64,000 nucleotides of DNA. Source: Heteronotia binoei. Taxonomy: Eukaryota. This document shows, one piece after another, positions 35,414 through 51,200 of the stretch. The DNA lies in the NCBI RefSeq assembly GCF_032191835.1, contig NC_083237.1:5332001-5396000 (forward strand), in the 5' to 3' direction. Within the stretch, counting starts at the first letter, position 1, and every line of letters starts with the position of its first letter. The notes beneath the pieces were generated by a model. That model did not search any database, was not told where the DNA came from, and saw nothing but the letters and a program-made list of their open reading frames with translations. The position numbers and the translations under genes were made by a program.

Positions 35414-35600
35414 CTGTCCTGCTTTCCGTGACAGAGCTTGACTTTTGCTTCTGATCTCGCTTACTAGAGAGCAACAGAAATGGAGCCGCAGCAAGGACCA
35501 TCAAAAGCACTAAGGCCTCCGGTATTTTCACCCTTGCGGATTCGAACACAGCTGAGTTCTGATTGGACGAGGACACACTGTGAAGTTGACATCCAATTAG
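35403..35600 (-). pseudogene. Histone H2A pseudogene (first about 12 codons, 5' UTR and promoter)
   Basis: Aligns to 43510-43720 (intact H2A start and promoter): shared CTGCTTTCC, CTTCTGAyCTCGCTTA, GCGGATTCGAA, GAGTTCTGATTGGACGAGG and GTGAAGTT blocks. Confidence 0.75.
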
Positions 35601-39703: not shown

Positions 39704-40181
<478 letters not shown>

Positions 40182-40214
40182 GGCTTCCGCCGCCAACGAC
40201 ACAGACGCACAAAA

Positions 40215-40230
40215 GGTCCTTTTAAGGGCC
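40215..40230 (+). terminator. Histone 3' stem-loop of H4 (G-U variant)
   Basis: GGTCCTTTTAAGGGCC followed by ACCCA; HDE GGAAGAGCTG downstream. Confidence 0.9.
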
Positions 40231-41648
40231 ACCCACGTCTCCATGGAAGAGCTGATTTGCCATGTCCCATTTTGTGATGATGAAGACCGGTTGTAAGGCG
40301 CACAATATTAAAACAAGCTTTTGAGTACAGCGGCACCTTTAAGAGCAATAAATTTTAATTTTTAAAGGGATGTTCGGATGTTGTTTTCATGGCGACCCGC
40401 CTGAATTGCAACATTTAAGCAATTACGAACGAAGGCTTTAAAGCGTTTAAACTGGTTGCTTTGTTCTGGGGTGGGTCGTTCGAGAGGTATTTCGTATTAA
40501 AAGGATATATTTTCCAGTTCCTGTGAAATTCTTGTGATTCTAATGGGTGGGTCGTTCGGGAGGTATTTCGTATTAAAACGGGATTTTTTTTTCCTTCCAG
40601 TTCCTGTGAAATCCTTGTGATTCTAATGTCACTATTTTAAAAGGGAACGTTGGCTCTCCAGATGTTTTCTGCCTACAACTCCCATCAGCCCCAGCCAGCA
40701 TGGCCAATGGCTGGGGCTGTTGGGAGTTGTAGGCAGAAAACATCTGGAGAGCCAACGTTGCCTACCCTGAAGTGGAATGAGCAGAGCAGCGAATAAGGGG
40801 ACGCACAGTAAAGGGGATCTTACCGCAGCCAATAACTGACTGCTGCGGTTAAATGGCTGAAAGCTAAACAAAGGGAAACTGATGAACCCAGACGGAACGG
40901 AAGAGATGTTTGTCGGGAAGGTCGGAAATCTTGAAGCATGTTGTGTTTTGCGCATTTGAAGCGGGGGATTTAGCTGTTCCTTATTGACAATAGCTGGGGC
41001 TGATGGGAATTGTAGGCAAAAAAACATCTGGAGAGCTACCGTTGGCCACCCCTGTGTGGATCCGGCCGCTCGTGCTGAAGAGTTCAAATGAATGCAGCTT
41101 TTAAAAAACACTTTCCCCCACTAACTCAGTCTAGCTGGGAAGTTGCCCTCCCCTTACCTGGATCCTCTAACCTGGAGGCTAGACTACCACGATGTACTCC
41201 TGTATTAAATATCCTGCACTGCAGAAGACTGCAGATTTATACCCCGCCCTTCATTCTGAATCAGAGCGGTTTACAATCTCCTATATTTTCTCCCCCCCCC
41301 CCCACACACACACAACATACGCCCTGGGGGGCGGGGTCTGTGGGGCTGAGAGAGCTCTCCCAGAAGCTGCCCTTTCAAGGACAGCTCTGCGAGAGCTATA
41401 ACTAACCCAAGGCCATTCCATCAGCTGCAAGAGGAGGAGTGGGGAATCCAACCTGGTTCTCCCCAGATAAGAGTCCGCACACTTAATCACTACACCAAAC
41501 TGGCTCTCTTGTGCAGAAGGTTGGACTAGGTGACCCTAGAGGGTCCCTTCCAACTCTATGATTCTTATGACTGCACAGGTCTGCCCTTGGTAGTCGACTC
41601 AGACACTCCAGTAGGTCCAGAATGCCCCAGCTCAGTTATTATTGGGAG

Positions 41649-41842
41649 TAGTGTTCCCCCTAAGCTGAGTTAGTGTGAGCGAGCTCACAGACTTTTAGCC
41701 TCCAGCTCTCACATTTTTGTCTTAGCTCAGGAAAAATGGCCCCAGGGCACACTAAATTCTTCAGTAGCTCACAGCTTTAATACCACTAGTTTACAAAGCA
41801 GAATCTTTGCTCACAAGACTCTGCAATTTAGAGGGAACATTG
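41649..41842. mobile_element. hAT-type MITE, same family as 26837-27030
   Basis: Same TIRs; perfect 8-bp TSD ATTGGGAG at 41641-41648 and 41843-41850. Confidence 0.88.
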
Positions 41843-43104
41843 ATTGGGAGGTAGCCTCAGCACGAACAGGGCACCCATTTTGCAGTTACTCCTAAATTTA
41901 AAAAATCAAGGTCATCCCCTGTGCAAGCACCAGTCGTTTCTGACTCTGGGGCGACGTTGCTTTCACAACGTTTTCACGGCAGACTTTTTCAGGGTGGTTT
42001 GCCATTGCCTTCCCCAGTCTTTTACACTTCCCACCCCCCCCAGCAAGCTGGGGACTCATTTGACTGACCTCAGAAGGATGGAAGGCTGAGTCAACCTCGA
42101 GCCAGCTACCTGAAACCAGCTTCCACTGGGATCGAACTAAGGTCATGAGCAGGGAGCTCAGACTGCAGTACTGCAGCTTTACCACTACTCCTAAATTACC
42201 AGACCCTATATGACCAGACGCTCTCACATGCAACCAACACCCTCCATCAGGGCCCTGGGTCATCCTTTTAGGCGGCTTGTAAGTCCCAGTCTTGGCCTGT
42301 TGCTTATTTAATGCCCCTTTGTAGCAGCTTGCAGGGTGACCCAATTTGCAGCTTCTGAGCAAGGCAAACTAAATGTGGAATGAAGTTCCACAGTGTGCAT
42401 GCTGTGGAAGGGTCCAGTGGCCCCTTTAAGACCAACTAGTTTAATTCTGGGTGTAAACCGTGGCATGCTTGAGCTTCTACCCAGAATTAAATTTGATCTT
42501 AAAGGCAAATGTTATGTTTAATAACTGCAACACAGTTTTAATTTTAGTGAATGGTTTTAACCTTTGGAACAGTTTCCTCTCTATATAGGGCTCTTGCTAG
42601 CCATTCCCCACATCTTTACCAAACCCAGTTCAAATGGGAGTACTAGAAAAGTCTCTAGACTCCAGAAATTCCCTGCCGTTAGGGGTGGCTAAACCTGCTT
42701 AAGGTAAGAGCTGCATAAAGGTCAGATTTGAGAGCCATAAGATATAAAGGTCAGCTGAAGGAAGGAAGTGTCTATGTTCCAAAAACTCCCTAACAGCAGA
42801 GGTGGCCAAACCTGCTTAAGGCAAGAGCCGCATAGCGAGAGCCACAAGATATAAATGCCAGCTGAAGGTGGAGAGGTGGAAAGAAAGCAACTTTAACTTA
42901 AGATGCATTTTTCAAGCTGCTAGCTGGCTCGGAGAAGCGATTTAAAGAGGCAAATGCCTTCTCCAAGCCGGCCAACAGGGTGAGGGGGCCTGAAAGCCAC
43001 ACAATGTGTGTGAGCTTGCCAGTTTGGCCACCTCTGCCCAACAGCATTAAGACTCAAAACTTTTGTTCTGAAAGTGGAGCAAGCTCTTTTAGGATCCTGT
43101 GGGT

Positions 43105-43120
43105 GGCTCTGAAAAGAGCC
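43105..43120 (-). terminator. Histone 3' stem-loop of H2A
   Basis: Minus strand GGCTCTTTTCAGAGCC-ACCCA; HDE AAAAGAGCTT at 43081-43090. Confidence 0.95.
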
Positions 43121-43163
43121 TTTTTGGGGGAAAGCGTAAGATGAAGGATCTTCGGAGCCGGCC

Positions 43164-43757
<594 letters not shown>

Positions 43758-43775
43758 CTAAACTTTTAGGAAAGG

Positions 43776-44480
43776 GTAGAACAAAATAGGAGTCGATTGC
43801 ACCTTTAAGACCCACCTGGTTTTATTCAGAACGTTAGCTTTCGTGTGCATGCACACTTCTTCAGGTACAGTAAGCAGAACCACATATAGCTGGTGGGGTT
43901 TGGAATACAAAGTGGCACAAAGTTAAAATCCAATATCTGAATAGTAAATCTCTCTGATACTCATAGTTCCCTTTTGTTAGGCGTTAGGATTAATTGAGAA
44001 ATATAAATCCAAGCGGGCAGCCGTGTTGGTCTGAAGTAGTAGAACAAAATAGGAGTCGATTGCACCTTTAAGACCAACTTAATTTTATTCAGGACGTCAG
44101 CTTTCGTGCGCATGCACTCTTCTTCAGACGAGGAATGAGGTACAGTAAGTAGAGCCACATATAGCTGGTGGGGTTTGGAATACAAAGTGGCACAAATTTA
44201 AAATCCAATAGCTGAATAGTAAATCTCTCTGATACTCATAGTTCCCTTTTGTTAGGCGTTAGGATTAATTGAGAAATATAAATCCAAGCGGGCAGCCGTG
44301 TTGGTCTGAAGTAGTAGAACAAAATAGGAGTCGATTGCACCTTTAAGACCAACTTAATTTAATTCAGGACGTCAGCTTTCGTGCGCATGCACTCTTCTTC
44401 AGACGAGGAATGAGGTACAGTAAGCAGGACCGCATATAGCTGGTGGGGTTTGGAATGCCAAGTGGCACAAAGTTAAAACC
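43776..44480. repeat. About 275-bp tandem repeat (about 2.7 units) of a Penelope-like terminal segment
   Basis: GTAGAACAAAATAGGAGTCGATTGCACCTTTAAGACC recurs at 43776, 44039, 44314. The Penelope assignment rests on resemblance to reptile PLE ends and is tentative. Confidence 0.6.
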
Positions 44481-44698
44481 CAATAGCGGAACAGTAAAAT
44501 TAACAAATTCAGAAAACCTTTGATCTGGGTTGAATTAGCATGCGAAACCATAAAACAGTAACATGTCAGAATGTGAGAATGTCTGTTAATTAGTCTATTG
44601 CTGATAAACCTGGGTCAAAAAGAAGGTATTTCTTTCCCAGAAGTTTTTCCTGGCCAACTAATTGACCTTTTATCGCGAGGGCCAACTCGGCAACGGTG

Positions 44699-45068
44699 AT
44701 TGGCTGAGAGCAAAGCCCCCCTTCCAATGACAATGCGCTTCTCTCATTCTCATTCAAAAATAACAGAACGTGCTAAGTTGTCAACCAATGAGGAAGGGCC
44801 AACGTTTGGGAAAGTAGTTTCGTGCGCTTTATTCTCTTATCGTTACTATTTGGCGGGGGTTTCTTGCCAGCAGGCCAATAGACTGAACAAGGGTGGGAAG
44901 TTCCCATTTGCGCAACAGGGAAGGGGGCGTAACCTGGAGTTTGCAGAGGAAGCCAAGTTTCTCTTTTGCAAAAAGTTTGCTTGGAGGCGGTTCCTGAGAT
45001 CTCCTGCAGCTGAGAGACGGAGCCTCTTCCGGAGCAGCAAAGCTGAGCCTAGGAGAGGACCGGTAAGC
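44699..45068 (+). promoter_or_regulatory. CCAAT-rich promoter-like segment with candidate non-coding first exon and splice donor
   Basis: ATTGG 44699, CCAAT 44724, 44785, 44875; CpG-rich non-repetitive sequence; CG|GTAAGC donor at 45063. Confidence 0.5.
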
Positions 45069-46337
45069 ACGCTTGCGGGTGGCGCTTTGGGGTTTCGGCG
45101 GTGGACGGACCCTCCTTTCTCCGAAAGTTTATCGGAGGCAGAGAAATCGACTGGGAGGCTGGAAGAGGGCTGGTCGCGAGCTCCCCGCACCCTCCGGGTC
45201 TAGGAACTCCCTCGCAGATCGCTTCCAGTTTGGTATCGTGGTTAAGTGCGCGGACTCTTATGTGGGAGAACCGGGTTTGATTTCTCACAGCTCCACATTG
45301 CAGCTGCTGGAATGGCCTTGGGTCAGCCAGAACACTCGCAGAGGTTGTTCTTGAAAGAGCAGCTTCTGGGAGAGCCCTCTCAGCCCCAGCCAGTTTGGTG
45401 TAGTGGTTAAGTGCGCGGACTCTTATCTGGGAGAACCAGGTTTGATTCCCCACTCCTCCACTTGCACCTGCTGGAATGGCCTTGGGTCAGCCAGAGCTCT
45501 CTTATCTGGGAGAACCGGGTTGGATTCCCCACTCCTCCACTTGCACCTGCTGGAATGGCCTTGGGTCAGCCAGAGCTCTCTTATCTGGGAGAACCGGGTT
45601 GGATTCCCCACTCCTCCACTTGCACCTGCTGGAATGGCCTTGGGTCAGCCAGAGCTCTCTTATCTGGGAGAACCGAGTTTGATTCCCCACTCCTCCACTT
45701 GCAGCTGCTGGAATGGTCTTGGGTCAGCCATCGCTCTGGCAGAGGTTGTCCTTGAAAGGGCAGCTGCTGAAAGAGTTCTCTCAGCCCCACCCACCTCACA
45801 GGTTGTCTGTTGTGGGGGAGGAAGGGAAAGGATACTGTGAGCAGCTCTGAGATTTGGAGTGGAGGGCGGGATATAAATCCAGTATCCAATCCACCCACCT
45901 CCCAGGGTGTCTGGGGTGGGGAGAAGGTAGAGAGCCAGTTTGATGTAGTGGTTAAGTGGGTTTGATTCCCCACTCCTCCACTTGCAGCTGCTGGAATGGC
46001 CTTGGGTCAGCCATAGCTCTTGCTAAGTGGTTAAGTGTGCAGATTCCTATCTGGGAGAACCGAGTTTGATTCCCTGCTCCTCCACTTGCAGATGCTGGAA
46101 CGGCCTTGGGTCAGCCAGAGCTGTTGCAGGAGTTGTTCTTGAAAGGACAGCTGCTGCAAGAGCTCTCACAGCCCCACCCACCTCACAGGGTGTATGTTGT
46201 GGGGGAGGAAGATAAAGGAGATTGTGAGCCGCTCTGAGACTCTTGAGATTCAGAGTGAAGGGCAGGATATAAATGCAATATTTTCTTCTTCTTCCTGAGA
46301 GACAGTACTTTGGACGGAAGTCTCCTTGGCTGTGCAG

Positions 46338-48218
46338 ATGGCCCACAGCTTCGAGGCCTTTGAGCGGGACGTCCAGCGGGTCACGGAGGCCCTCTCGCAA
46401 GAAGCCATGGCGAGTCGTTGGCCGCCTTCATCCATTTCCCAGCGCTACCAGGACAACAGAGACGGAACGGTCAGGGAGATCCTAGATAGATCCCCGCCCT
46501 GCCTGATCCCTCTGGATCTGCTGCACCGCTATTTCTCGGACGTGTTTAATCGAGACGACGCCAGGGGCGGCGGGCCCCGGCCAGAAAACCTGCCCCGGCT
46601 TCCCCGCGTGGAGTCCCACAACGTCCTGATGGAGCCCGTCACCCCGGAAGAAGTGAAAGCCATGTTCAAGCGCAAGAAGAACTCCAGCCCCGGCGTAGAT
46701 GGGATCCGCTTCCGCCAGCTGAAAAAGTGGGACCCGGAAGGCAGGAAACTGACGGACGTCTTGGAGAGATGCAGGCAGTTCGGGCGCGTCCCGGCCGACT
46801 GGAAGAGAGCCAGGACTTTCCTCAAATTCAAGCAGGGTGACCTCGGCGACCCCAGCAACTGGCGACCCCGGCAACTCTGCAACACCATATACAAGCTCTA
46901 TGCCAGGTGCCTGGCTGCCCGCATCACCCTGTGGGCCCAGGAAGGGGAAACCCTCAGTCCCCAGCAGAAAGGCTTCCAGGCCCAAGTGGGCATCGCCGAG
47001 CACCGCTTCCTCGTGCAGGCGGTGCTGAACGTGGCCCGCGAAAACAGGGGGGAGTGCGCCGTGGCCTTCCTGGACCTTGCCGACGCCTATAGCTCCATCC
47101 CGCGCTGCCACATCTTTGAGACGCTGGAGGAGTTTGGCATGCCCGAAGAGTTCGTGGACCTCCTCCGGGAGCTGTACGACGGGTGGACCGTAGAGGTGAA
47201 GAATAAGGGAGAAAAGGCAGAGTTCCCATTCCGGACGGGACTCATGCAAGGGTGCCCCCTGAGCCCCATCCTGTTCCAGCTGGGCATAGAGCCGCTCCTC
47301 CGTTGCATCGGTGGCCAGTCGCGCGGCTTTGGCCTGCATGGTGTAAGAGTCGGCGTGCTGGCTTACACCGATGACTTAGCGCTGGTTGCCGAGAGTGCCG
47401 AAGAGCTGCAAAGCATGCTGGACGACGCCACGGCCGCCGCTGACTGGATCGGCCTGCGCTTCAAGGCTGGGAAGTGCAGATCGCTCCACTGCAGAGGCGG
47501 AATCTGTCGGCTGACCCAGTTCAGAGTCCAGGGGGAGGCCATTGCCTTCCTGAGGGAAAGAGAAACAGTCCAGTACCTGGGAAGGCCCATCAGCTTCCGA
47601 AGGCAGCCGGAGAACCTCGCTTCTCACTTTGAGGACAAGTTGGACAGGATCGGGGAATCGCGGCTCAGTCGCTGGCAGAAAGCTAACGTGATGATGTGGA
47701 ATCTGTTGCCGACTACTCTGTCCGAGCTGAGAGAGAGGCACGTCCCGAATAAAGAGCTGTGCAGGATCAAGTGCGAAATCGCAAATGCGCTCTCCCAGTG
47801 GGACCCCGACGATCAGAGACGGGGCAAAGACCTGAAGGTGCAACAGCTGAGCGACATCGAAGTGGTCAGCCACGCCGCCTTCCTGCTCTCCAGCCCCGAC
47901 AGGGTCGTGAAAGCTGTAGCCCTCGGCGCCCTTCGGGGCATCGTCCACGAGAGCTTTGCCCAGGATCCTACCGATGAAGACTTGGCTTCATACCTGAACG
48001 GGTACCGGGAAGACCAGACTCATCACCGCAGTGGGACTTCCACTTCCTTGTGGGCCCGGGCCAGATATGCTACTCGGCGACTCAACAAACTCATTGGCTG
48101 TCAGTGGAGAGAGTGCAACGGTGAACTGCGATTGGAAGTGCTCAGACGCCTCATAGAGGAACGCAAGAACCTGGCACGTACTCTCAAACGTGCTGTGAAA
48201 AACTACTTACCAATGTAA
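46338..48218 (+). CDS. Reverse transcriptase-only protein derived from an R2/NeSL/Utopia-clade non-LTR retrotransposon (626 aa from ATG 46338)
   Basis: Uninterrupted ORF with motifs SPGVDG, SNWRP, QQKGF, FLDLADAY, GLMQGCPLSP, LAYTDDLAL (YTDD at 47364-47375), GLRFKAGKC and YLG, then SRWQK and LWARAR typical of RLE-clade elements. No CCHC knuckle or PD..D endonuclease before the stop. Confidence 0.9.
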   Translation: MAHSFEAFERDVQRVTEALSQEAMASRWPPSSISQRYQDNRDGTVREILDRSPPCLIPLDLLHRYFSDVFNRDDARGGGPRPENLPRLPRVESHNVLMEPVTPEEVKAMFKRKKNSSPGVDGIRFRQLKKWDPEGRKLTDVLERCRQFGRVPADWKRARTFLKFKQGDLGDPSNWRPRQLCNTIYKLYARCLAARITLWAQEGETLSPQQKGFQAQVGIAEHRFLVQAVLNVARENRGECAVAFLDLADAYSSIPRCHIFETLEEFGMPEEFVDLLRELYDGWTVEVKNKGEKAEFPFRTGLMQGCPLSPILFQLGIEPLLRCIGGQSRGFGLHGVRVGVLAYTDDLALVAESAEELQSMLDDATAAADWIGLRFKAGKCRSLHCRGGICRLTQFRVQGEAIAFLRERETVQYLGRPISFRRQPENLASHFEDKLDRIGESRLSRWQKANVMMWNLLPTTLSELRERHVPNKELCRIKCEIANALSQWDPDDQRRGKDLKVQQLSDIEVVSHAAFLLSSPDRVVKAVALGALRGIVHESFAQDPTDEDLASYLNGYREDQTHHRSGTSTSLWARARYATRRLNKLIGCQWRECNGELRLEVLRRLIEERKNLARTLKRAVKNYLPM

Positions 48219-51200
48219 GGAGCTGTCATGGGCCAGGCAACCCAAGGATTCATGTGCCGGGCTCTTCCAAAAGTAGCTGTGGGGATGCTCACAATCCCTG
48301 CTTGTCTCCTAGAGAGATTCCATCCCACACAATGCCGCTAGCAGCACTCGATGCTGTGGAACATGGCACAAGGCAGCAGCATTAGTGCCTTCTAAATGGA
48401 ATCCCAGTTCTACTCTTGATCTCAGCCAAAAGACCGAGAATCCCAGTCTTGAAAACAAAGTCACCCAGAGCCACGTTATGCCTGGATTCGAACGCTGGCT
48501 CGGAAGAGACGTTCTATGAATGAAGTGAAACAACGAGCGATGATGCGGAATTTCTCAACTTTGTTTAACGTACGCTTGTTTTCTCTTTTAATATGAGCTT
48601 TTTTTTTTCCCCTTTAAGGAACATGGCCGTTAGATGTGCAGCAGATAGATGTTAATCTCTGCTTTTTAAGTTTGCAGTCGCAGTTTCTGGATTGAAGTGA
48701 TGTTTATATCCCGTGATGTGCCTCAAGTATCTTCATTAAATTACTCATCGTTATTACTAACTCCACCTTAATGTGTTTAACAGGCTGCTTTTCCATTTCT
48801 GCATCTGAACGTGGGAACGTATCCTGCCTGCATCTTGTTTGGAGCTGTGTGCTGGTGGTACATGATTTTGCAGTACGTGTATGCAGTGAGGGGGGGGGGG
48901 GGGATCCCAAAAATTTAAAAAAAGTTATCTCTGGTATTTGCTTCAGTAGTTCATCTCGATGGGTAGTCCTCAGTCTGTCTGGAGCAGCCGAAAAGAGCAG
49001 GAGTCAAGGAGCACTTGAAAGACAGACAAAATTTGTGGCAGGAGCTTTTGTGAGTTGCTTCTCACCTCACAGTGAGCCCCGCGGCGCAGAGTGGTAAAGC
49101 TGCAGCACTGCAGTCGGAGCCCTCTGCTCACGACCTGAGTTCGATTCCAGCGGAAGCCGGTTCAAGTAGCTGGCTCCAGGTTGACTCAGCCTTCCACCCT
49201 TCCGAGGTCGGTCAAATGAGCCCCCAGCTTGCTGTGGGGGAAAGTGTGGATGACTGGGGAAGGCAATGGCAAACCACCCCGTAAAAAGTCTGCCGTGAAA
49301 ACGTTGTGAAAGCAGCATCACCCCAGAGTCGGAAATGACTGGTGCTTGCACAGCGGACCTTTCCTTGCCTCTCACTTCTTCAGATACTTTGGGTTATCCC
49401 ATACTGAAGGGATCTGAAGAAGCAAGCAGTGACCCAAAAGCTCTTACCTGCCACAGACTTCTTGCTCTTTTCTACTTCCAGCTCATTTTGGTTTTGTTTC
49501 CCCTAAAAAGATCACATTATTGCACTGCAACCAACGTTCCCTCTAAGCTGCAGTTTTGTGAGCAAAAATTCTACTTTGTGAGCTCCTGGCAGGCCTCGGC
49601 TTCAGCAGAAGCTCACAGGAGTGCAGCTCCTGAACCTTTCTGAGGGTCTTGCAGGCCTGGAATAAAATGATATCAAAAATGTGCAATAGTGCCATAAGAA
49701 AAGGGAAGCTGTCCTCTCGCCGCATGCAAGAAACAGTAGAATAGCTAAAAGAGGAACTAAGCTTGCAGACGCTTGCTGGAATAACACATTTAGTAAACGC
49801 ACCTAGGAAATGTCCTGAGAGCAGGAATGAAGAGGGCAAAACAGGCTTATGATAAAGGCTATTGCGCTAAGAGGCTAGTAACGTTAATGCCATATACGGA
49901 ATAGACTCTGCAGCCCCTCCTTGTTCCATATGTAAAATGGAACTTTAATGCCAGCAGCCCTGGCTACTGGTATTAAAGCTATGAGCTGCTGGCATTAACG
50001 TTGTGGGCAACTGCATAAATTATTGTGCTCCGGGGCCGTTTTCCCTGAGCTAAGACAAAAATGTGTGAGCTGGAGGCGAAAAAGCTATGAGCCAGCTCAC
50101 GCTAACCCCACTTAGAGGGAATGCTGCTCCCAAGTCTGCTGTCAAAGGAAGGCCTTGAAGAAGGCGGAAGGATTTGTAATGCTGCTTGCGTAGCACCCCC
50201 TGCCCCATGCTCTGAAATCTCTTTCAAGGGCAGGATTACCCTGAACAAAAAACCTGAGGGCAGGGGATGGCTCTTCCTCAGGAAATACAGGCTTCCGTTC
50301 GCTTGCGTGCTTAACAAATTGTTTTTCCCGTTCTGCACAGCCAAACGGAAGCCCTACTGGGCAATATGTCTACCTAGCTCCACCCACTTTCTAAAAGCAT
50401 TTAGCGGGCACCAGGAAAGGTGTCCAGGTTGGAGACAACGTTCCCTCTGAGCTGCAGAGTCTTGTGAGCAAAAATTCTACTTTGTGAGCTGCTGGCATTA
50501 AAGTGGTGAGCGACTGGGATAAATGAGTGTGCTCTGGGGCCATTTTTCCCGAGCGAAGAAAAAAATGTGTGAGCCGGAGGCTGAAAAGCTTACACTAACT
50601 CAGCTTAGAGGGAACGCTGGTTGAGGATTTCTGTACTATGTTGTCTGTCCTATAATGGAGCCCTGGTCTTTCTAGCAACTGACTTTAGGCAAGCCCTCAG
50701 CTTGGACCTTATATCTCTCATACAATGTTCCTTGAGAGAGAAGAGCCCTTTTATTTATTTGCAGAATTTGTATTCTGCTTTTCCACCCTTACAAGGGGGC
50801 CACCAGGGTGGTGAATCATTTTTTTAAAAAATTATTTAATTCACTGTCACCCTGTCTTTCTCCCCCGTGGGAACTTAAGGCAGCTTACATCATTTTCCTT
50901 TCCCCCACTTTCTCCTCACAACAACCCTGTGTGGTAGGTTAGGCGCTGAGAGAGTGTGGTGGGCTCAAAGTCACCAGCCGGCTTCCCTGACAGGGTAGGG
51001 ATTTGAACCTGGGTCTCGGATACTACTGCAGCACTTCCCACTGCATCACAAAGGGTTAAACAGGATTATGCTACATTTTAAAAGCATTGTTTTTCCCCCA
51101 TCCTGTTTAACATGCATTTTTAACAGTTTTGTACATATTTTCACACTTTTAATTGTTTTAATGATGTGTTCTGAACATGCATGATTAAAATATTTATTTT

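Follow-up and report, generated by a model that had tools for sequence, protein, structure and literature searches.

An old RT-only ORF and the question of its promoter

From which promoter is a reverse transcriptase (RT) gene of retrotransposon descent expressed when it lies beside a histone gene? The question is raised by a stretch of 64,000 nucleotides (nt) from the gecko Heteronotia binoei (assembly GCF_032191835.1, contig NC_083237.1, positions 5,332,001 to 5,396,000 of the forward strand), hereafter the window, where an RT-only open reading frame (ORF; 46338–48218, plus strand) sits between the genes for histone H2A and TAF9. An earlier note, made from the sequence alone, had proposed that a promoter, a non-coding exon and splice sites upstream could express this ORF, divergently from H2A and in the position usually taken by H2B. 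As the ORF is an old transcribed gene, it needs a promoter, and the explanation that we prefer, tentatively and with a little less than an even chance of being right, is that 44700–45062 is a weak TATA-less promoter of the CpG-island/CCAAT (NF-Y) type with a short non-coding first exon for the RT-only gene. Transcription would start around 44900–45000, the donor at 45063 would be joined to a cluster of AG acceptors at 46299–46305, and an intron of ~1.24 kb, made up mostly of lineage-inserted short interspersed elements (SINEs) and containing 11 ATGs, would be removed. The mature mRNA would be ~2.5 kb long and of low level, with its 3′ end near 48650–48750. The RT gene would then be an ordinary RNA polymerase II gene merely adjoining H2A, and no part of a histone-type H2A/H2B bidirectional unit.

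Descent and constraint of the RT-only ORF

46338–48218, plus strand: intact 626-codon RT-only ORF of R2/RLE-LINE descent (long interspersed elements, LINEs, with a restriction-like endonuclease, RLE); motif A aspartate (D246) and YTDD kept

The ORF matches Pfam RVT_1 (E = 1e-31), and its best relatives of solved structure are R2 proteins (E ~1e-34). The RT fingers, palm and thumb are homologous to those of R2/RLE LINE proteins (PDB 9nl3, 9dou, 8gh6) and the catalytic aspartates, which are invariant in our alignment, are kept, but unlike these proteins the ORF has no N-terminal zinc-finger/Myb region, no CCHC knuckle and no RLE. An exhaustive HMMER search reported one close relative, P0001, encoded on Logan contig L001 (62% identity), followed at ~40% identity by proteins of Anolis (P0019, 712 aa) and Podarcis (P0021, 672 aa). 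All four squamate proteins lack CCHC and RLE and share their C-terminal end point, which lies ~310 residues short of the end of L002, a related element that retains a CCHC knuckle and a PD-(D/E)xK endonuclease. Since these domains are missing, the gecko ORF cannot be an autonomous element. L002 (454–3909), the closest endonuclease-bearing relative, consists of one 1151-codon ORF, whose N-terminus is of low complexity, rich in Pro, Gln and Ser and, unlike that of classical R2, without a zinc-finger motif.

In a phylogenetic tree the four RT-only proteins form one clade (support 99/96), within which the gecko protein groups with P0001 (100/100) and Anolis with Podarcis (97/96), a branching that matches the squamate species phylogeny. 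Between the window and L001 the synonymous divergence (dS) is 0.53, and the ratio of non-synonymous to synonymous divergence (dN/dS) is 0.52 overall and 0.22 in the palm. The ORF thus shows what is expected of a domesticated gene: it is intact, it is under purifying selection in several species and its mobility domains are lost. Searches by tblastx and tblastn for coding remnants derived from a transposable element (TE), upstream (zinc finger, Myb) or downstream (RLE) of the ORF, gave nothing significant. No second copy of the ORF was found in the window or in the genome index, which is sparse. No exact product of the ORF is on record in public assemblies, and our literature search found no description of a vertebrate RT-only gene of this type. 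Judged by sequence comparison, the ORF seems to belong to an old lineage that is truncated and has the character of a host gene.

The flanks of L001 align with the window on both sides of the ORF, within a contig of just 2.3 kb, and its 3′ flank is 74% identical to the 3′ untranslated region (UTR) in the window. The Podarcis locus shares only repeats with the window, and neither histone genes nor TAF9 lie within 10 kb of its RT-only ORF. Turtle synteny was also tried and rejected; in turtles the relatives are copies of TEs, of which one lies within an ICA1 intron. The whole 1.9-kb gecko ORF is itself CpG-island-like (GC content 0.60, observed/expected CpG ratio, o/e, 0.78; L001 0.60, Podarcis 0.69), and such CpG richness in an old ORF suggests germline hypomethylation or strong compositional constraint.

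Transcription of the ORF

48219–48700, plus strand: 3′ UTR, in which RNA coverage stops at ~48632–48700; ATTAAA at 48735

Reads and contigs of two metatranscriptome runs (X1 and X2) and two host RNA-seq runs (X4 and X5, ~6% of each read) were mapped to 44500–50499. Contigs of X1 and X2 cover 46301–48632 at depth 4–10, and have zero depth on the unique flanks at 44700–44899, 48700–48899, 49700–49899 and 50100–50299. With the ORF covered and the unique flanks at zero, the signal comes from RNA and not from contaminating DNA: the RT ORF is transcribed, at a low level. Divergence of the contigs from the window is 0.6–4%, and X2 carries an in-frame 3-nt deletion at 46421. The RNA ends slightly before the ATTAAA, one of two places at which the earlier note had suggested looking for a poly(A) site. 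A word search with the N-terminal 119 residues for a short RNA contig holding the 5′ end of the ORF gave no match.

Host run X4 covers only 47900–48699, at depth up to ~9, which takes in the 3′-terminal 300 nt of the ORF together with the 3′ UTR, and its first mates are skewed to the plus strand (~19 to 7 pairs). A 3′-biased library, a short separate transcript or antisense RNA could each be the cause. When minus-strand RNA was considered as the source, no minus-strand poly(A) signal was found near 47900–48000. Just 3′ of the stop codon, one X1 contig (record 6) lacks 52 nt of the window (48238–48289), and at the same spot the X4 reads carry three fixed differences (48255, 48258 and 48265).

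A unique CpG-island-like block upstream of the ORF

44699–44879, plus strand: CCAAT/ATTGG cluster, candidate NF-Y-type promoter core (ATTGG at 44699; CCAAT at 44724, 44785 and 44875)
44700–45226, plus strand: unique CpG-island-like block (527 bp, GC 0.54, CpG o/e 0.73)
44900–45062, plus strand: putative non-coding first exon, ATG-free, ending at donor CCG|GTAAGC

Between H2A and the RT ORF, the block at 44700–45226 alone is non-repeat DNA. Its CpG o/e of 0.73 is to be compared with 0.75 in the TAF9 promoter, 0.19 in the SINE stack that follows the block and 0.41 in the whole window, and its length, GC content and o/e are those of a CpG island (>200 bp, >0.5 and >0.6, respectively). Repeat-type read depth on the block is zero and 44560–45230 has no second copy within the window, so that its description in the earlier note as unique, CpG-rich DNA is confirmed. 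A paralogue of 44500–45230, such as a duplicated histone promoter, was sought in the window and rejected, as just one 61-bp repeat match was obtained. The three ORFs that overlap the block have no match in a Pfam scan, and tblastx and tblastn gave no significant likeness to TE proteins. The 3′ end of the block (45178–45226) aligns with L001 68–117. It is this island-like unique DNA amid CpG-poor repeats that stands out at the locus, unlike the single motifs within it.

Those motifs are present where the earlier note had put them. All four CCAAT/ATTGG boxes were found, and two of them have good NF-Y flanks when read directly from the sequence, namely AGCCAATCA (on the minus strand) and AACCAATGA. 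The candidate donor (GT at 45063–45064) is the sole one scoring at least 7/9 in 44700–45230. It lies in an ATG-free run, bounded by ATGs at 44788, the last one 5′ of the SINEs, and at 45260; 46296–46337, just before the start codon, is ATG-free as well.

SINE stack, putative intron and candidate acceptors

45225–46295, plus strand: sense-oriented SINE stack, bulk of the putative intron (~1.07 kb, at least 4 copies or fragments)
46280–46305, plus strand: candidate acceptor cluster, AGs ending at 46299, 46301 and 46305 (CAG|T)
46321–46337, plus strand: second possible acceptor, TCTCCTTGGCTGTGCAG, directly before ATG 46338 (pyrimidines 11/20)

The stacked SINEs that the earlier note describes after the donor are present, over ~1.07 kb. 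One of them has an internal array (79 bp ×4), and the stack as a whole contains 11 ATGs and draws enormous RNA depth. In L001 the equivalent of 45178–45226 joins directly to that of 46296–46337 and the ORF, with no SINE stack between. As the two flanks in the window are contiguous in L001, the 1.07-kb stack is a lineage-specific insertion into a once-continuous sequence, and comparison of the two sequences puts the original distance from donor to ATG, before the SINEs, at about 200 nt. L001 has an independent SINE tail of its own farther upstream, at the position equivalent to ~45170; with a separate SINE in the same interval, the interval tolerates insertions in an intron-like manner. A SINE tail (GGGCGGGCTATAAATAATAAAT...) is also seen ~600 nt upstream of the RT-only ORF of Podarcis (L005 9340–9415), a third lineage with a SINE there, and these 600 nt are CpG-poor in Podarcis (o/e 0.31).

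Both acceptors named in the earlier note were found. The pyrimidine tract of the cluster (14–17/20 pyrimidines) is the (TTC)n tail of the last SINE, and the first acceptor motif, AGACAG|T, is kept in L001, the closest relative. The AG of the second acceptor, which ends at 46337, is not kept there. The leader at 46299–46337 once coded for protein in the ancestral element (gecko ...LWTEVSLAVQ vs ...PWQASWISRVQ in L002).

Is the putative first exon joined to the ORF?

A clue comes from X2. Its 5′-most contig on the ORF (record 11, 452 nt, depth 3.93) matches the window only from 46301, within the candidate acceptor cluster, and its first 61 letters lie elsewhere. X2 is also the sole run with depth in the bin that holds the putative exon: 0.77 in 44900–45099, which equals 39 letters at depth 3.93. 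A break at 46301 together with this bin depth is the pattern expected if a contig had exon 1 spliced to the AG cluster, and we take it as a hint and not as proof. The start site, the use of the donor and the splice itself are what we infer from this pattern and from the sequence features around it.

Several observations weigh against this gene structure. A junction from 45062 to 46302 or 46306 is absent among the 15 joints listed (there are 96 further joints). The depth of X4 and X5 is zero on 44700–45099 and on 46300–47899, and on exon 1 it is zero in X1 as well. The SINE tail ends only ~6 nt from the break at 46301, and record 11 differs from the window by 3.3%; a different SINE-tail or microsatellite haplotype in the X2 animal could have caused the break. 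CCAAT boxes reach a density of four or more per 200 bp in three clusters within the window, and one or more such clusters arise in 87% of random placements; donors of at least 7/9 occur on the plus strand at 1.56 per kb of the window, and the ATG-free run has p ~0.05 in dinucleotide shuffles. The CCAAT cluster is therefore not enriched beyond chance, and neither the box cluster nor the donor nor the ATG-free run individually exceeds it. No TATA box was seen in the block. Finally, 13 of the 17 listed differences between the window and the X1 contigs are non-synonymous and four are synonymous, a ratio suggestive of weak recent constraint; over the long range, by contrast, dN/dS is 0.52. These 17 differences, at 46930–48031, include no stop codons, and at this short range the ORF looks near neutral or adaptive.

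The proposal of the earlier note is therefore sustained in part. The ORF is old and transcribed, the block is the sole CpG-island-like unique DNA upstream of it, and the X2 contig breaks at 46301 with depth in the exon-1 bin; a junction from 45062 to 46302 or 46306, the latter one of two that the note had suggested looking for, is missing among the joints listed, and reads on exon 1 are lacking in both host runs, X4 and X5.

The rival that survives best, which we regard as possible but doubtful, is that the RT mRNA starts near the ORF, in the SINE stack or where the stack ends, or else as an unspliced transcript in 45063–45226, and that the CCAAT/CpG block is something separate. The block could then be a promoter, orphaned or relic, or an enhancer, or a non-coding RNA could start there. 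Such a start is compatible with the absence of the junction among the joints listed and of exon-1 reads in X1, X4 and X5, and the 46301 break adjoins a (TTC)n SINE tail of a kind prone to polymorphism. The ATG-free run, moreover, extends beyond the donor to 45260, as it would in an unspliced ancestral leader, and in L001 collinearity extends from the contig's own SINE across the leader and on into the ORF. On the other hand, a start near the ORF leaves the X2-only depth in the bin 44900–45099 without explanation, an unspliced leader across the SINE stack would carry 11 upstream ATGs, and the stack is CpG-depleted (o/e 0.19), unlike a germline-active promoter.

We consider it improbable that the constellation arose by chance, with boxes, donor and AGs all functionless and the ORF RNA derived from read-through, from spurious transcription or from a copy elsewhere. 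All the motif statistics are within chance, and RNA contigs that are 0.6–4% off the window, with differences that look neutral (13 to 4), would agree with this. But CpG-poor repeats surround a block that resembles a CpG island; four squamates carry the ORF intact, its dN/dS is <1 and its tree follows that of the species; the window and the sparse genome index hold no second copy of it; and the 3-nt deletion in X2 preserves the reading frame.

55150–55415, plus strand: TAF9 CpG promoter and first coding exon (GCGCATGCG-type sites, ATG 55356, donor after ...KDAQ, CpG o/e 0.75)

Very unlikely is a third possibility, that 44900–45062 is an alternative upstream first exon of TAF9 or another downstream gene, with the RT ORF in its first intron: TAF9 does lie on the same strand 10 kb downstream (exons from ~55.36 kb), with an acceptor-like CCCTTTTCTTTAG|CC just before ATG 55356, but a CpG promoter of its own, containing GCGCATGCG-type sites, immediately precedes that ATG, exon 1 has zero reads in two host RNA-seq samples, unlike a widely expressed gene (TAF9 expression there being unchecked), and the RNA contigs cover the ORF as a sharp-ended unit and not as intron background.

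At 55330–55356, within the apparent promoter or 5′ UTR of TAF9, a pyrimidine tract, CCTTTCCCTTTTCTTTAG, strongly resembles an acceptor and stops 5 nt short of the start codon. Two tRNA matches lie between the RT gene and TAF9, at 52897–52968 and 53990–54060, the second being a clean tRNA-Gly(GCC).

Relation to the neighbouring H2A gene

43164–43553, minus strand: histone H2A coding sequence, recognised by translation and motif scan; neighbour gene on the strand opposite to the RT ORF
43080–43125, minus strand: H2A 3′ stem-loop (Rfam RF00032)
43554–43760, minus strand: proximal promoter of H2A itself (ATTGG 43683, CCAAT 43715; CpG o/e 1.08)
43776–44498, no strand assigned: tandem repeat, 275-bp unit ×2.7 copies, between the H2A promoter and the CCAAT cluster

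The RT gene borders a histone cluster that includes H1 (~30.6 kb), H3 (~32.5 kb), H4 (~39.9 kb) and H2A. The H2A coding sequence is partly masked by Ns (43202–43336), and the masked part was left as it is. The core of the H2A promoter (43647–43708) shares 85% identity with an H2A pseudogene promoter at 35523–35587, and is thus duplicated beside an H4/H2A pseudogene. The copies of the 275-bp tandem repeat, 723 bp in total, are 92% identical, with one CCAAT per unit; the adjoining 44500–44699 is likewise multi-copy by read depth.

In the divergent H2A-H2B promoters of vertebrate replication-dependent histones the two genes stand head to head and share an intergenic region of a few hundred base pairs, which carries an octamer and a TATA box on the H2B side. 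Their transcripts end at a 3′ stem-loop, are non-polyadenylated and are expressed in S phase only. The present locus resembles this arrangement in that CCAAT boxes lie upstream of H2A, on the usual H2B side, and in that H2A is typical: it possesses a CCAAT promoter and a 3′ stem-loop of its own. It departs from it in distance, in content and in the gene downstream. The distance from the H2A ATG to the CCAAT cluster is 1,146 bp, as opposed to the usual ~0.3 kb, with the 723-bp tandem repeat and further multi-copy DNA in between. No H2B motifs or remnant were found in any frame of the window, and the block has no TATA box. The exact H2B octamer ATTTGCAT occurs at five places in the window, none of them in 44600–45100, and the block holds just ATTTGCGC at 44907, a match at 6/8 positions. 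The gene downstream is putatively spliced, and no histone stem-loop was found 3′ of the RT ORF; the only one that Rfam finds in 40000–56000 is H2A's own. If the repeats are removed, the first box is ~270 bp from the H2A ATG, and the H2A promoter and the CCAAT block may once have been close neighbours.

The claim that the RT gene occupies the usual H2B position is thus not supported, with H2A carrying its own promoter and the block 1,146 bp away, and neither is its suggested coupling to S-phase histone regulation, for which the octamer, the stem-loop and a histone neighbour in Podarcis are all wanting. We regard as a long shot the bolder idea of a squamate-wide RT gene of R2/RLE-LINE origin, catalytically intact and endonuclease-less, that in geckos is placed under a CCAAT-rich CpG promoter beside H2A and co-regulated with DNA replication, a host RT acting in S phase.

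Comparison with known gene structures and meaning

Many housekeeping and cell-cycle genes have TATA-less CpG-island/NF-Y promoters with a short non-coding first exon, and the candidate resembles these in its length (527 bp), GC content (0.54) and CpG o/e (0.73), as well as in its several CCAAT boxes with NF-Y-like flanks, its ATG-free leader and its good donor. It differs in that its box count is not above background. The likeness to domesticated TE genes with host-derived 5′ exons lies in a TE-derived ORF without mobility domains that persists across a clade, and the difference in its source, a non-LTR (RLE-type) RT that has retained its catalytic motifs. As in splice sites made by SINE exonisation, the pyrimidine tract of the candidate acceptor is a SINE tail, although here a sense-oriented SINE provides the tract, as (TTC)n.

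The gene structure proposed here is ordinary in kind, and the interest lies chiefly in the RT gene. If the promoter, the exon and the splice are real, they show how an old, retrotransposon-derived RT-only gene is expressed in geckos: it would be driven from host-type CpG/CCAAT DNA, across an intron that would have grown from ~0.2 to 1.2 kb through SINEs, one of which would have given the acceptor its tract. This would provide a concrete handle on a vertebrate RT distinct from telomerase and from mobile elements.

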